Shown here piece after piece: positions 22,555 to 30,100 of a stretch of DNA of 64,000 nucleotides (its first letter is position 1; the number at the start of each line of letters is the position of its first letter). The notes beneath the pieces were generated by a model, which saw only the letters and a program-made list of their open reading frames with translations, searched no databases and was not told where the DNA came from. A program made the position numbers and the translations under genes. Source of the stretch: Kudoa neothunni (taxonomy: Eukaryota > Animalia > Cnidaria). The stretch spans positions 5,996,443 through 6,060,442 of the forward strand of contig OZ199838.1 in NCBI GenBank assembly GCA_964304625.1, read 5' to 3'.

Positions 22555-25500
22555 TTAAATTGTTGACGGTTTTTGAATGGAATCTTGAAGGTCTTTTATT
22601 GCTGACATGAAAGACTTGGTATTACCCCGAGAGTTGCCAATTGGATTGATCTAACGGAAAAATACAATCTGTTCGATAAGACTAAAAAAATTCACATCAA
22701 TATTCAGCTTATACTGAACCTTGGCACTGTGTGTTAGCCTCAGCAGATTGATAACGGTTTTCAGAATGTTACTGGAGGAGACAATAAGGGATGAAGCCAT
22801 TTGACTGGCTTCATTGTGATCACTTTGGCCTTTGTAGCCAGAATACACTGATCCGTAATTCACCTTGGAAATCATCAACAACTGTTGCAAAAATAATGGA
22901 AGTTCTTCCGTCAAGTTAGTGATCTCAGATTTGGTTGTACCTTTTTGGCACTAAATCATTGGTGAGTTTTTGTGAAATAGAAATTTTTAATTAACACAAT
23001 TACTTGGTTTGCTATTTTGGAGCACAATGCTATCATATCCTCACCAAGCCGCTTTATTTCTCGACAGTTGTTTATGATATCTTTATCAGTAATTAGAGGG
23101 CCTTCGCTTCGAGTGAGATCAACAATATGGGAGACTAAAAAGCTAATTTTTTTGGCCAGCGCCAATATGCCATAATCAGCATTAGGATTGTCGCTAGAGG
23201 CTGGATCGATTTTGTCACTCATGAGTGCATCATGTGCATTGATCGAGATAGATTTGCGTAATTGGCTAAGGAAGTCGCTTTGTAATTGGTCAAACTCTTT
23301 GTTGAGTTTATTGATTTTATCGCCATCATGTTTTTTGATTTTTTTGATGAGACTGTGAATGTTATTCTGAGAATCCGTGGTATTTGTAATTGTTTCATTT
23401 GTAGAGGTATTACTCACAAATAGAGATGAATCTGAATTTGATGGCTGAGTCCCTATAATGATTTCCCAATCAATTACAGCAACAAAAAGTAGATCTACTT
23501 ATGTATTCAACCAAGTGGATTGGAACAGTAGGTGCAACCTTGACACATCTAAAATTGTCCCCTTTCTTGACTGCTTCGCTATTAACAAAAATAGCTGAAA
23601 AGTTATCTTGTGGATGTATATTGTTTGATGGAAAATCAAAAAACTGAGACACACTTTCCAAGGAATCACCTTAAACCAAAAATGATAAATATCCATTTGG
23701 TAAACATATGCAAGTTTACCAATTCCATGCGTAAAAACAAAACAACACACGCTTCCTATGGTTAGACCACCAATAAACTCTTCGATTTCTGCCGCTTTTA
23801 CTTCAACCAAATTACCATAGTGAGGATTTTGAAGGTTCTCAAACACATAACAATGACCACAACCAGCGTTATTATTGGTGCCGTCAAAGACCCCTTTGTT
23901 TACAGAGTTCATGTATTCAACTCCATTTATGGTGATGGATGTAAGGAAAGGAATAGGCGTATTATTATATAGAGTTTGTAGACTGACAGCGGATGAAGAC
24001 GAATGGTTCGTCTGTTTAATTTCAACTTTTACCACCTCACCATATGCTAATGGTGTAGGAATATTATCGTTATAAATGTGGGAAAGCTTTGAAGCGTTGA
24101 TAACGCTCGATTGGGCATGATACCAACTGATATATCGGTGTGTAGAAACATAACCAACAAAAATGGCACTATTCAAACTGACGTCGTCGCCTGTGGATGG
24201 TGTGTAATTTTTTTGGAACTTGGAGAAAATCTGGCAGTCAATTAGAGTAAAATAATTGATCAGATTGTCTGGGATTTTTGAATCTAAAGAAATTTTTTAC
24301 GATTTTAATATATATCGTAATTGTAGATGAGTTACTTGTAGGATTAATGACTGAAACCACCAAAAGTGTGCGTGGTGTCAAACACTTGAGGAAGTTGATA
24401 ATTTCGGCATCTTCCAGTTGATAAACTCTCACATCAATCACGGAATTACCAAATTCGTTGACAACCACAAAACACACGCAAGGATCATATTCGATGACGC
24501 ATGCTGTGTTGTTGATGGAAATTTTAGAGCTTATGACGTTGGATGCTATCGTATTGTCGCACACCTGTTCCACACATAGTTTAACCGTCGCTATAATTTA
24601 AGTTAATGGGTTATTAAATGATCTGCAATGTGCATACTTGTGGGGGCTGGAGCTGATAACTTGTCGAGTGGGTTATTCATCTTATGAATAAGATTCTAAA
24701 ATAATAAAAATCACAGATTTCGCAAACAATTAGTTTGAATACATGTATATTGTAGAGTGAAGTGAAATCATGTAACTCGGATTGAATCTAAAACGCGTCC
24801 ATAACCAAGAAAATAAACGGTATAATTACATTCGAGCACAAGCGCTCAAATTTTTCAAGGTAGTTCTCCGGCAACATTACGCTGGGATTGTTGGTTATAA
24901 AATGATGTACCGAAACAAATGCACGATAAAATTTTCTAATAGCTATCACATGGAATTAGCGAATGAAATGACAGATCGATAAGTACATTTATTTTTAAAG
25001 TTTTGTATTTTATTTAAGACTACTTGAGAATGATCATTGTTTTGATCATACAATAACTTGTCTCTCACAAAACACAGCATATAATCCAATAGAGCAGCGA
25101 TCGATACAGATTTTGAGTGGAAAAGTTCGGCCTTCCCAGTGCTGATCGATCTTATGGCTTCTTTGGCAGCTGAAAAATACAGATCCTCTATATAAAGTTG
25201 CCAATTCAGTTCAAATGTGTATTATTGTTTACCTAACAGCGCGAAATAATCACCAAAATTTATTGTTCGATGCAAATCAGCGAGGTATTTGTAGTAAATC
25301 TGATGCCACAATGAGCTTAGGTAGTTCACCATGGAATAGTAGAGACTACAATCTTTAACACAGTTCAAGCTGAACCAGTGTTCGATAACAAACAAAATCT
25401 AACATAATATAAAATAACATCTGTATAAGCATTTAAAAAAAGATTGAAGTACTTGCTTGGACACAAAACTAACTTTGTCAGAAGTAAACAACAGTTCTGC

Positions 25501-27138
25501 AGCTTGGGTTTCATCCGTAGCCAACAACGACATTATTCCTGCATTCTAAATCAGTACGAATAATAAAACGAAATTAAGTTTAATCAGTACGTTTGTCAGC
25601 GTGGAAAACAAATCTCGAAAATTGTTGAATAATGGCTCTTGGCTGTTAGATTTTTTGATAGTAGAAATCAGCGAGTTGAATTGATAGAGGGTTGATTTTA
25701 AGGTGTTACCAATAGAGACCATAACTTCCGCTTTCAACTATATTCGCAATAGTTTAGTACCATTTACAATTATAACTCTCATTACTTTAGCGAGAAACAA
25801 CTCCAAGCTATCTACAGCCAAAACAATTTCATCCCACTGAAAGTTATTCTTTTCTACCTAAATGGAATCAACTTATATAAATGTGATGGTTGAGGTTAAA
25901 AATTCACCTCGTGTTGACAATCTCGTAGGAGTTGCCTAGTATCGTCATAGTTGGATTTGATGTCAACATGAGTAGCGGCTAACGAAAGTAATAACTCTTC
26001 AAGAATTTTAAGTTTGGAATTTAGTATGGATAGGTCATCTGAAGTCAAATTTTTGTCATTCAATTGAGTTTTCACATAGTGAATGGTGGAATAAATAGAT
26101 ATGGAAGAATTGAGTTTGTGGAGAGTGATTTGATGGACGGAATTTCTAGTAAGGTCCAGTTGATCGACACACATTGAGATAGCTTCGATTCTTTTACCAT
26201 GTCCACCCTAGTAAAACAATATTTGGTAAGAACTAAGAATATAATTGATAATAAAATGTAATTTAGACTTAAATATAAAAATTAATGAAAGAAAGCACAG
26301 CCTTGTAGCTGAAAATACCTTGAAATTGGAAATATATTTCAACTGGAGAGTGGAGCAGGAAAAAAAGAACAAATGTTTCAGTAGGTTATCAATTCGTTCG
26401 GCTTTCGTGAACTAATCAATGAGTCTATAACGTTTCAGTGAATGTGAAAATGTTACATGAACAACGTCGTATATCATGTGAATAAGTTGAATGGATTGAT
26501 TAGTTAGATGGTTCACCTTTTGGTTGAATATCTCATCTCTTTGCCATCTTGATACTTCGTTGAGTTGAATGTAGCGTTCTCGGATCTATGCATATACATC
26601 AATATCAAATGTTTAGGGGATATTTCTATAAACTGTACTTTTGCAATCATTCTAATGGTTGAATCCGTGTGATTACTGTAGAAAACCTCACAGATACGTG
26701 ACGAATTATCAAGATATTTTTTCAATGAATCTATCAGACATTTTTTATGGCTTGGTTTCAGCGGCTCCGAGAGAAACACAAGCAAATTTTTAACAAGATA
26801 TTTGTCTGTTAAATAGTAAGTTTGATAGCAGCTGCCACACATAGTTATAGAGTTAATTACACTTGGCCGTTGCGTCACTGATAAGACTGGTGAAAAGAGT
26901 TTGATCTGATTTGAAATGGACCAACTGTTTCTCAATTAGATTCTGTTGTTGAGCTATCCCACTTATGATATTGTTGGACTTTGTGGACAGTCCGAATGTG
27001 GCACATTTAGGAGGTTGACTGAGTTGATCGATCTACAAATATTCACAATCAAAATTCATCAACCACGCCTGTTCGAAATTAGCATAAAACACTAACATAT
27101 TCTCGCGAAATCACATTAACAGCTCTCATTTCACACAT
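22555..27138 (-). CDS. Alpha-catenin/vinculin-family protein with an inserted tandem ILEI-like module; 20 exons, about 1190 aa
   Basis: 19 GT-AG introns join all the ORF fragments into one open frame. M-region resemblance: LEELLLSLAATHVDIKSNYDDTRQLLRDC and LAKLKAEVMVSIGNTL. The C-terminal actin-binding domain ILALAKKISFLVSHIVDLTRSEGPLITDKDII...LQQLLMISKV...SLIVSSSNILKTV aligns by eye to alpha-catenin IIVLAKQM...DFTRGKGPLKNTSDVI...CHQLNICSKV...SLIQAAKNLMNAV. The first exon is the least certain. Confidence 0.82.
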
Positions 27139-30100
27139 TTAATCGGTAAAATAAAAAACAAAATATTGCGACTCTATAGGGGTACGCTACAAAGAGACTC
27201 CAAATAGATTAGCGTCACCTTACTAATATAATAGATCTAGGTGGTGCAGCGATGTCGGAACGTCTAACGAATTCTTTTAGCAAGGAGGTGGACAGTGAAA
27301 GCGCACATCCGCGAATACATTAAGACCGTTATTAGTCTAATACAATCTCACTTTATAATTAGTCAACATAAATTATTCGGATTTTCGATTTAACCTAATC
27401 ACCATCACTATAGTCATAGGAGTGTCGTTAGCGTAAGCAACGATGTAGGCGGCAGCCGACAAAGAATGCGGCTACTGTCCAATTTGAATTTTGTCGATAG
27501 TCTAAAAACCCTTTCCGATAAATAACGTAGAAATAAATTATTTTTTTCTTTTGTTATGCTTGAAATATTCAATCAAAAATCTAAAATAATTTCTTAGTAT
27601 TTACCTATCATTCCATATTTGTTTATCTAGGTTGGATCTCATTTAATCTCCTGATGCTAAAAATCCTTCTGTGATATATTTAGTTGACATTTTGGGTGAA
27701 TAATAATGTAGATGGAAACTAAAAAAATAATTGTGGTTTTTGATTGACATTGAATTATTCAAGTTTTGGGTTTTTATTATGAGCCTTTTACTCTTTTTAT
27801 CGGCAAAAGCTCTTTAAAAATGATCCCTCTTCCAATTTATTAGTTTTATTCGCTATATCAATTAAATAATCGAAGTAATTCTTGTTCCTACTTTAATAAT
27901 ACGTAAAAATTTGATTTGGCCATCACAGAGAACATTTTCCGTTTTTTATCTAGTAGATTGAGTACATATTGTTACGAAATCAGTTAGATTTGTGATCTAA
28001 CTGTTTTTAATGATTCCATTATTAAGTACTCCAATCAAAAAGTAAAAATTAATGATTATTATTAATATGAACACATATTTTTGAATGAACAAACCAAATT
28101 ATTTATTTTTACCATTTAATTTGATATAAAAACATTCGATGCATTTTTTGAATATCATAAAACATAATCCATTGGAAAAAAATTCAAAAAAGTACAAATT
28201 TATTTGATCTAAGATAACGATTTTTGTGTATAAATTATAATAAAATAAAAAAATGTGATGTATTATGCAGTAAACCTTCACTTTAAACCATTAAAAATAT
28301 CGATTCTTGTTTTCACATAGATCGCATGATAAAATTATTTTAATCGTATTTTGTAGAAAATAAAAAAACTTAAAATAAAGCATACAATTAAAATCAATAA
28401 TGGGCGATATCACTATAGATCAACTTCCGCTAATATTTCCTATGCGACCGAACCCTTCCTGTTTTATAATAAATTTCCTCGAAACCGTCTGATTTAAAGT
28501 ACTTTGAGATTATTGTTTAGTCGTGGAGGAATTTAATCCTGTATAGTTTATATACGCGTAAGCCATGTTACTCCCAAACAATTCCTATTTTTAAGGCGAA
28601 CGATTCTACCACTAAATACGAACTCTTATATTTGTTGCGTGATTATTTTAATTTCGAAAAAAATTCCCTAATGCGCAGAATAACAATATAATCTATTGAT
28701 GGGATAATGTTGTAAGCCTTCAAAAAAATACATAATAAAAGGAAATATTTAATCTTAATAATCTTTATTTATTATGATATGAATAGATTTTTCATAGTAA
28801 TCGTTCAAAGAATTTTTATATTGGGGCGATTTTAGGAAAAAACAATACTTACACATATTCGAAATTAAATGATCTCTTTTAAATATTATTTATAACCTTA
28901 TAGCAATTTTTCAAAAAATTTTTCATAAGGGAGTAAATAAGTAAAAAAATTCGTGGAGAGATTCGGGAATTAATTAATTAAATTTGTGAGATTAAAGGAT
29001 TTGAATATTTATATAGTCCTGATAAATAAAATTTCCTCCAAGTTCGCCTCATAATGTTAATTTCAAATAATCCAAAAATAAATTTCTAAACAGAGATATG
29101 TTAAAATTATAACTAATAGTATTTAATTTAAATTTAACTCCAAATAAATAAAGAATACCTTGTTTACAAAGTTATTTCAAGAAAGGTCAAAAATATAAGG
29201 CGTATTAAGATTTAATACGCATAAAAGAATCAGAATCAATATAACAAATAGTTTCGATTTTCGGTAGTTACAAGGGTATTTTAAGTAAACGGAAGGCAAC
29301 AATTCAGATAGCTCAATCAAGTATGCAACAGCAATCTTAAAATCAATATGGCATCAAATATATGCTATGGTAACGTCAAAACGTACAGAAACCCTTTCTT
29401 AAATTCCCATCTCAGCTCCCCTTTCCCATAAAAAAGATAGCATAATAGAAGCACGCAACGAATAGTTACCTGATCGCTTGCTTGATTTATTGATGAAATT
29501 TCCAACCAAGAACAACACCTCATTGCCTAACAAGAGTGATAAGATAGCGGTCAATTCTGAACAGATTTAAGACTACAACAAAATCTTGTAGGATCAATCG
29601 ATTGTAGGGCCACACTGTTTGTTAGAGTATTCCCGTGAGAGTAGTAACACAGGATATACGCTCAATTAAACAAAACACCTTTTACAAGGTGATTCACAAC
29701 AAGAAAACACCTGACAACACTAAATTAACTGAAAACTATTTGATTTGGGTGTGGAATAGTTTTTAAGGATTTTCGGAATTGGTTTTACGGTACTTAGATT
29801 TCTACCTTAATTCAAGTTTAATCTGGCTTTATCACTATTTTTATACCTCCGTATAACAACCGACTATGATATCCAGTTATCTCTGCAGTATCATACTTTC
29901 ATTGCATCATGTTGAAAGAAATAATATTTTTCTACCATACACAAAATTAAACTTCTCAAAATTCTCTAATGGTATCCACAAATCCCTACAGGCGTAGGTG
30001 CGATAGATTCGATCGTGTAGGTGTTGTTTGTGAAGTCTTCACAGGTCCAATATATCCATAATAACTATTAGCATGATAGCTTTGAGAATACTATCTCTTT

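Follow-up and report, generated by a model that had tools for sequence, protein, structure and literature searches.

Can the hinge of an alpha-catenin accommodate folded domains of an otherwise extracellular type, and how might such a protein have come to be encoded, and kept, in the genome of a parasite? Cadherin junctions are coupled to actin through alpha-catenin, which senses force, and the evolution of its regulated actin binding is an open question on which the locus described here bears. The locus lies in a 64,000-nucleotide (nt) stretch of DNA from the myxozoan Kudoa neothunni (GenBank assembly GCA_964304625.1, contig OZ199838.1, positions 5,996,443 to 6,060,442 of the forward strand; C1:5996443-6060442 of a 40.3-Mb, four-contig genome). 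This whole stretch is termed the window, and positions are those of the window unless stated otherwise. A first-pass annotation of its letters had described an alpha-catenin with two ILEI/PANDER-like domains, encoded at 23499-24590, inserted after the M region and ahead of the actin-binding tail. Our analysis confirms that observation: as predicted from the sequence, this is one gene, encoding an alpha-catenin with two FAM3/ILEI-type domains at its hinge. The best explanation as a whole, to which we assign a probability of about three in four, is a myxozoan alpha-catenin bearing a two-ILEI hinge module, acquired long ago, that would confer constitutive binding to F-actin.

Exons were anchored by blocks conserved with a related locus, by three-frame translation of the minus strand and by inspection of the letters, and for each adjacent exon pair the frame-preserving, stop-free GT...AG introns were listed. 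The window is AT-rich (G+C 26-40% in 2-kb windows) and its introns are very short, those of this gene measuring 42-111 nt. The predicted gene comprises 19 GT-AG exons on the minus strand, from 27032 to 22555, whose joining gives a single open frame, 1181 codons long and closed by a stop codon. The insert occupies exons 14-16 (24590-24336, 24283-23720 and 23669-23499; 990 nt, or 330 codons), is beta-rich, and is frame-continuous with both the upstream exon 24695-24638 and the downstream exon 23452-23004, so that the single spliced frame read earlier, running through about 330 residues into the catenin tail, is upheld. The limits given for it proved exact, position 24590 being the first base of exon 14, after AG, and position 23499 the last base of exon 16, before GT. 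Neither a start codon nor a hydrophobic leader or signal peptide marks the beginning of the insert, whose first methionine lies deep inside the second domain. The features of the gene are as follows.

27097..27138, minus strand: tentative first coding exon, with ATG at 27138 or 27129, donor GTTAGT and a 64-nt intron to 27032
24638..27032, minus strand: N/M-like region of 13 exons, model residues 1-586, all GT-AG, frame kept, no stops
27032-26861, 26805-26639, 26585-26457, 26411-26319, 26207-25908, 25857-25786, 25737-25591, minus strand: N/M-like exons 1-7
25545-25453, 25398-25233, 25187-24987, 24942-24830, 24787-24743, 24695-24638, minus strand: N/M-like exons 8-13
24336..24590, minus strand: insert exon 1, first half of predicted FAM3/ILEI-fold domain 1; faint Pfam ILEI match, 41% identity to L002 2847-3161
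23720..24283, minus strand: insert exon 2, rest of domain 1, inter-domain linker and first half of domain 2; 40% identity to L002 3093-3632; a further match at E 4.2e-38
23499..23669, minus strand: insert exon 3, second half of predicted FAM3/ILEI-fold domain 2, ending in a phase-1 donor conserved in L002
23004..23452, minus strand: linker and first part of the alpha-catenin actin-binding domain; matches to Pfam Vinculin and to alpha-catenins of the PDB
22696..22950, minus strand: second actin-binding-domain exon; Pfam Vinculin match, 58-76% identity to L002
22555..22650, minus strand: last exon, C-terminal extension and stop codon

The sequences denoted L001 and L002 are contigs of related species, from two public runs, that encode relatives of the insert. 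With insert exon 2 (window:23721-24281, minus strand) as query, exhaustive phmmer searching gave two real matches, P0001 (expectation value, E, 1.3e-23) and P0002 (E 6.2e-11), carried by L001 (1.2 kb) and L002 (8.8 kb, 20.6% G+C) respectively; a third, P0003, was rejected as a low-complexity false hit. Word-indexed searches led from the insert to P0001 only and from the tail exon to nothing. L002 is collinear with the window across the whole gene (window 26996-22558 against L002 678-4745). Each N/M-like exon aligns in order within L002 678-2789 at 32-71% identity, and per-exon identity amounts to 33-41% for the insert and 39-76% for the tail. In L001, as in the window, the M3-end exon is followed by the linker exon and then by the insert. 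The insert of L002 is a single intron-less exon (L002:2845-3810; 966 nt, or 322 codons), which confirms the splice joins made inside the insert of the window. On either side of the insert the introns are phase 1 in both the window and L002, with lengths of 46-47 nt in the former and of 37 and 36 nt in the latter. Within the insert itself introns vary: the window has two (24335-24284 and 23719-23670), L001 only the second (at about 1020-1060) and L002 none, the intron within domain 2 thus being common to the window and L001 and the domain-1 intron being absent from L001. The last bases of L001 (1224-1244, the end of the Logan contig) are Illumina adapter and are not genomic.

The family to which the insert belongs is indicated by both sequence profile and predicted fold. 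The insert of L002 matches Pfam ILEI (PF15711) at 38.8 bits (gathering score 27; E 1.4e-9), and P0001 matches at 26.8 bits over columns 3-89 of the 90 in the profile. The insert exons of the window score only faintly (12.8-13.7 bits per exon, E 0.09-0.17) because an intron splits domain 1, and domain 2 went undetected by Pfam ILEI in all three species. Structures were modelled for the insert of the L002 orthologue rather than for the window's own protein. The AlphaFold2 model of this 321-residue insert has a predicted local distance difference test score (pLDDT) of 65.5, and the head of its Foldseek list is taken up entirely by FAM3C/ILEI, the POMGNT1 stem, FAM3A and FAM3B/PANDER (E 2.9e-5 to 3.7e-3), relatives of the kind named with the original observation. 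Domain 1 (residues 1-160) aligned by VIA-align to the POMGNT1 stem at Z 13.6 (root-mean-square deviation, rmsd, 3.0; 136 residues aligned), to TMEM2 at 12.9 and to FAM3B at 11.5, the next unrelated chain reaching Z 4.2. Domain 2, modelled alone (161 residues, pLDDT 66.8, predicted template modelling score 0.60), gave Foldseek matches of which the top 17 ranks listed all belong to the FAM3/ILEI family (E 2.4e-3 to 0.12). A scan of 48,161 chains, independent of Foldseek, aligned it to POMGNT1 at Z 9.3 (rmsd 3.4; 126 residues aligned), FAM3A at 8.2, FAM3B at 7.8 and TMEM2 at 5.0, with all else at or below 3.8. Atlas feature and shape searches with the insert returned ILEI-bearing clusters. On these models the insert is predicted to consist of two complete FAM3/GG-fold domains, of which Pfam recognises the first only, and the likeness to FAM3, the POMGNT1 stem and CEMIP originally seen by eye is borne out. 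The accompanying description of two similar repeats held in part: the quoted motifs are present and the two halves have a predicted fold in common, while no significant sequence similarity was found between them (BLASTP E 17; probability 0.2% by hhalign of three-species profiles), their kinship being visible only as predicted fold.

The identity of the protein as an alpha-catenin is carried by its tail. Homology searches were run exon by exon or with stop-free reference sequences, the joined model serving as a frame check only. Exon 23452-23004 matches Pfam Vinculin over profile positions 700-755 (E 7.3e-8, 31.7 bits) and exon 22950-22696 continues over positions 756-835 (E 0.012, 14.4 bits), both being singly below the 38.1-bit whole-protein cut-off. 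When the first of these exons was compared with PDB sequences, the ten best matches, all at E <0.01 (1.9e-4 to 4.5e-3), were alpha-catenins, headed by alpha-N-catenin (E 1.9e-4) and including alpha-E-catenin aligned over its residues 697-764; the eleventh was HMP-1, also an alpha-catenin (E 0.3), and no vinculin chain occurs among the matches listed. In the 40.3-Mb genome this locus is the sole Vinculin-family match at E <0.01. The 586-residue N/M-like region has the length and position expected of the N and M domains and is conserved between species; from its position, length and collinear conservation we infer that it is homologous to the N/M region of alpha-catenin.

Other parts of the genome, and the 5' end of the locus, yielded observations that touch on this gene. 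A second, weak Vinculin-family locus, L004 (C3:8436491-8439787; open reading frames at L004 1009-1203 and 1492-2178), gives collinear weak matches to N-terminal positions 2-56 and 110-208 of the Vinculin profile and, judged by these matches, is probably a vinculin gene. Nematostella has one alpha-catenin and one vinculin, a complement that L004 and the catenin locus would match. Elsewhere the genome also has a gene with cadherin repeats, whose open frames are very long (796 and 1331 amino acids), and two Armadillo-repeat loci (C1:3889383-3891038, C1:4702128-4702613 and C1:1507447-1507727 for these loci together), so that it may encode partners for a cadherin-catenin complex. The cadherin cytoplasmic domain PF01049 has no match in the genome, a result that is uninformative since the search was also silent in controls. 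Upstream of the 27032 acceptor, 27138 and 27129 provide the only frame-compatible ATG...GT candidates. The minus strand of 27200-27480, just upstream of the first recognisable exon, has no long open frame and appears by eye to be richer in G+C; it may be a promoter, a 5' untranslated region or a repeat. No Rfam RNA families were found in the window.

The protein had been presented in the first-pass annotation as one of undescribed architecture. That claim does not stand, since the architecture has been published for Nematostella vectensis, whose alpha-catenin carries a 362-residue insert in the hinge that joins the M domain to the actin-binding domain (Clarke et al. 2016, PMC4948710), with two regions like Pfam ILEI (PF15711; E 5.7e-11). 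The Nematostella insert is a trypsin-stable 37-kDa subdomain, after deletion of which the protein is more compact and binds F-actin with markedly lower affinity, and the authors concluded that it relieves an otherwise autoinhibited conformation (PMC4948710). The cDNA included the insert, and the architecture is proven at the level of both cDNA and protein. The same authors called the insert unique to N. vectensis and missing from other cnidarian orthologues (PMC4948710). The architecture is thus documented in this one cnidarian; a full-text literature search found no further papers linking ILEI with alpha-catenin.

Several observations weigh against the reading adopted here. Pfam scans of ten pieces of the window and ten of L002 detected neither alpha-catenin nor vinculin in the N/M exons; four two-species profiles of these exons found no alpha-catenin or vinculin among PDB sequences at E values up to 10; and one Atlas feature search with the N/M region likewise found none. 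The initial assignment of both the N/M region and the tail to catenin is sustained by direct matches for the tail, with no exon-level match for the N/M region, and the Pfam comparison suggested at that stage, when run per exon, registers Vinculin on the tail and ILEI, above its gathering score, on the L002 insert. Comparison with L002 found no conserved first exon or start codon. Confidence in the AlphaFold models, which represent the L002 orthologue, is moderate (pLDDT 65.5 and 66.8), and the gene model of the window was built from genomic DNA sequence. The phmmer search with insert exon 2 failed to recover the Nematostella protein, leaving direct homology of the two inserts unproven. Finally, the report that other cnidarian alpha-catenins are without the insert (PMC4948710) would require losses if the insert were ancestral.

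With respect to function, we reason by analogy with the biochemistry of the Nematostella protein that the folded module would hold the N/M bundles away from the actin-binding domain, and that the protein would then bind F-actin constitutively, being neither autoinhibited nor force-gated. A bulky hinge module giving constitutive F-actin binding is the most likely function, one to which we would give about even odds. Instead of being a passive conformational spacer, the insert might bind a ligand or partner (sugar, lipid or protein) and so bring it to the hinge, in line with the ligand-binding module proposed in the first-pass annotation. Its closest structural match is the carbohydrate-binding POMGNT1 stem, and the two domains are about as well conserved as the rest of the protein (33-41% against 32-71% elsewhere), which is beyond the need of a mere spacer and suggests that they are something more. 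In the Nematostella experiments, however, which are the only ones on this architecture, conformation and affinity for F-actin were affected and no ligand was identified (PMC4948710), and a cytosolic location makes glycan ligands unlikely. We regard this proposal as possible, at well under even odds; a binding role would nevertheless be compatible with the function of a hinge module.

A further proposal, which we consider doubtful, is that alternative splicing treats the three insert exons as a cassette, to be included for the protein of 1181 residues or skipped for an in-frame, canonical form of 851 residues, which would provide the parasite with a switch between constitutive and autoinhibited actin binding. 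The flanking introns are both phase 1, the cassette measures 990 nt in the window and 966 nt in L002, and a direct join of 24638 to 23452 keeps the frame; exon shuffling alone, however, predicts such symmetric phases, and the Nematostella cDNA held the insert (PMC4948710).

The origin of the module may be approached through other ILEI genes of the same genome, which contains at least 10 further Pfam ILEI exon matches. These loci include a tandem cluster at C3:6525544-6559954 (L006-L011) as well as C2:3453609, C1:7022036-7027955 and C2:10997312 (L005 and L012-L014). Two pairs of matches in the C3 cluster lie about 12.3 kb apart and have identical scores, which suggests a recent segmental duplication. 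Profiles of the two insert halves match the other ILEI loci only weakly (E 0.005 or worse), and the lack of a close relative of the insert among them argues that the insertion is old. As a symmetric unit of phase 1-1, the insert has the form that exon shuffling into a phase-1 intron would be expected to leave. Taken with the presence of the architecture in Nematostella, which makes the module most likely old in Cnidaria, these features point most readily to an old cnidarian acquisition, probably of an ILEI-domain unit shuffled into a phase-1 intron at the hinge, that the strongly reduced genome of the parasite would then have kept. We infer a common origin for this insert and that of Nematostella.

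The opposing possibility, that the myxozoan and Nematostella inserts have independent origins, ILEI domains having been captured convergently at one and the same hinge, draws on the two points already given, namely the cnidarian alpha-catenins reported without an insert (PMC4948710) and the absence of a link to the Nematostella protein by phmmer with insert exon 2, and on the numerous ILEI-domain genes of this genome as possible donors. It must account, however, for insertion at the same site of the same rare type of domain, in two copies each and at similar lengths (330 and 362 residues), and for an insert that is not close to the other ILEI genes of its genome, which favours an old event; we judge it distinctly improbable. 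An extension of the preferred reading, that the two-ILEI hinge module is ancestral in cnidarians and has become in myxozoans a skippable cassette toggling the sole alpha-catenin between constitutively actin-binding and canonical, autoinhibited forms across life stages, strikes us as unlikely, to much the same degree as the cassette proposal itself. That the ILEI-like exons make up a gene of their own, flanked by an unrelated gene for a helical protein on one side and a short gene for an alpha-catenin tail on the other, as might be allowed by a model built from genomic letters and by N/M exons without a catenin signature detectable in exon-by-exon searches, is very unlikely, since the boundaries hold no stop, start codon or signal peptide, order and frame are kept in three species, the short flanking introns are phase-conserved in two species at about 40% protein identity, and the architecture is proven by Nematostella cDNA and protein (PMC4948710).

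The Nematostella insert, published as species-specific, had been the sole known non-canonical hinge of an alpha-catenin; with a two-ILEI module in three myxozoan genomes, such a hinge becomes a lineage-spanning feature. About two thirds of ancestral genes are reported to have been lost from the group to which these genomes belong (PMC12239612), and retention of the module despite heavy gene loss argues that it is functionally required. These considerations suggest that the insert dates far back in Cnidaria and that a parasite genome, though reduced, has kept it. The module further gains a predicted structure, that of two complete FAM3/GG folds, by which an otherwise extracellular fold would be used in the cytoplasm. 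The resulting correction to the literature is modest but concrete: an insert of this kind is not unique to Nematostella.

Three known systems place this protein in context. (i) Both halves of the insert have a predicted fold in common with FAM3A, FAM3B and FAM3C, the POMGNT1 stem and the GG domains of CEMIP/TMEM2 (Z 13.6 to 7.8), at a sequence identity of just 10-21%; whereas those proteins are secreted, lumenal or extracellular, the insert sits, with no signal peptide, in a cytoplasmic cytoskeletal adaptor. (ii) The canonical alpha-E- and alpha-N-catenins (PDB 4igg, 6duw) have the same order of N/M-like region, hinge and actin-binding domain, but only a short, flexible phospho-linker at the hinge, in contrast to the 330-residue insert found here. 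(iii) The alpha-catenin of Nematostella has, like that described here, a hinge insert with two ILEI-like regions (362 against 330 residues). The structure of the Nematostella insert was unknown in the original paper, whereas here both halves are predicted to be complete FAM3/GG folds, carried in a symmetric phase 1-1 cassette. Nematostella is an anthozoan and the present organism a parasitic myxozoan; the architecture is already described, and what is new is that a second, distant, parasitic cnidarian lineage has it.

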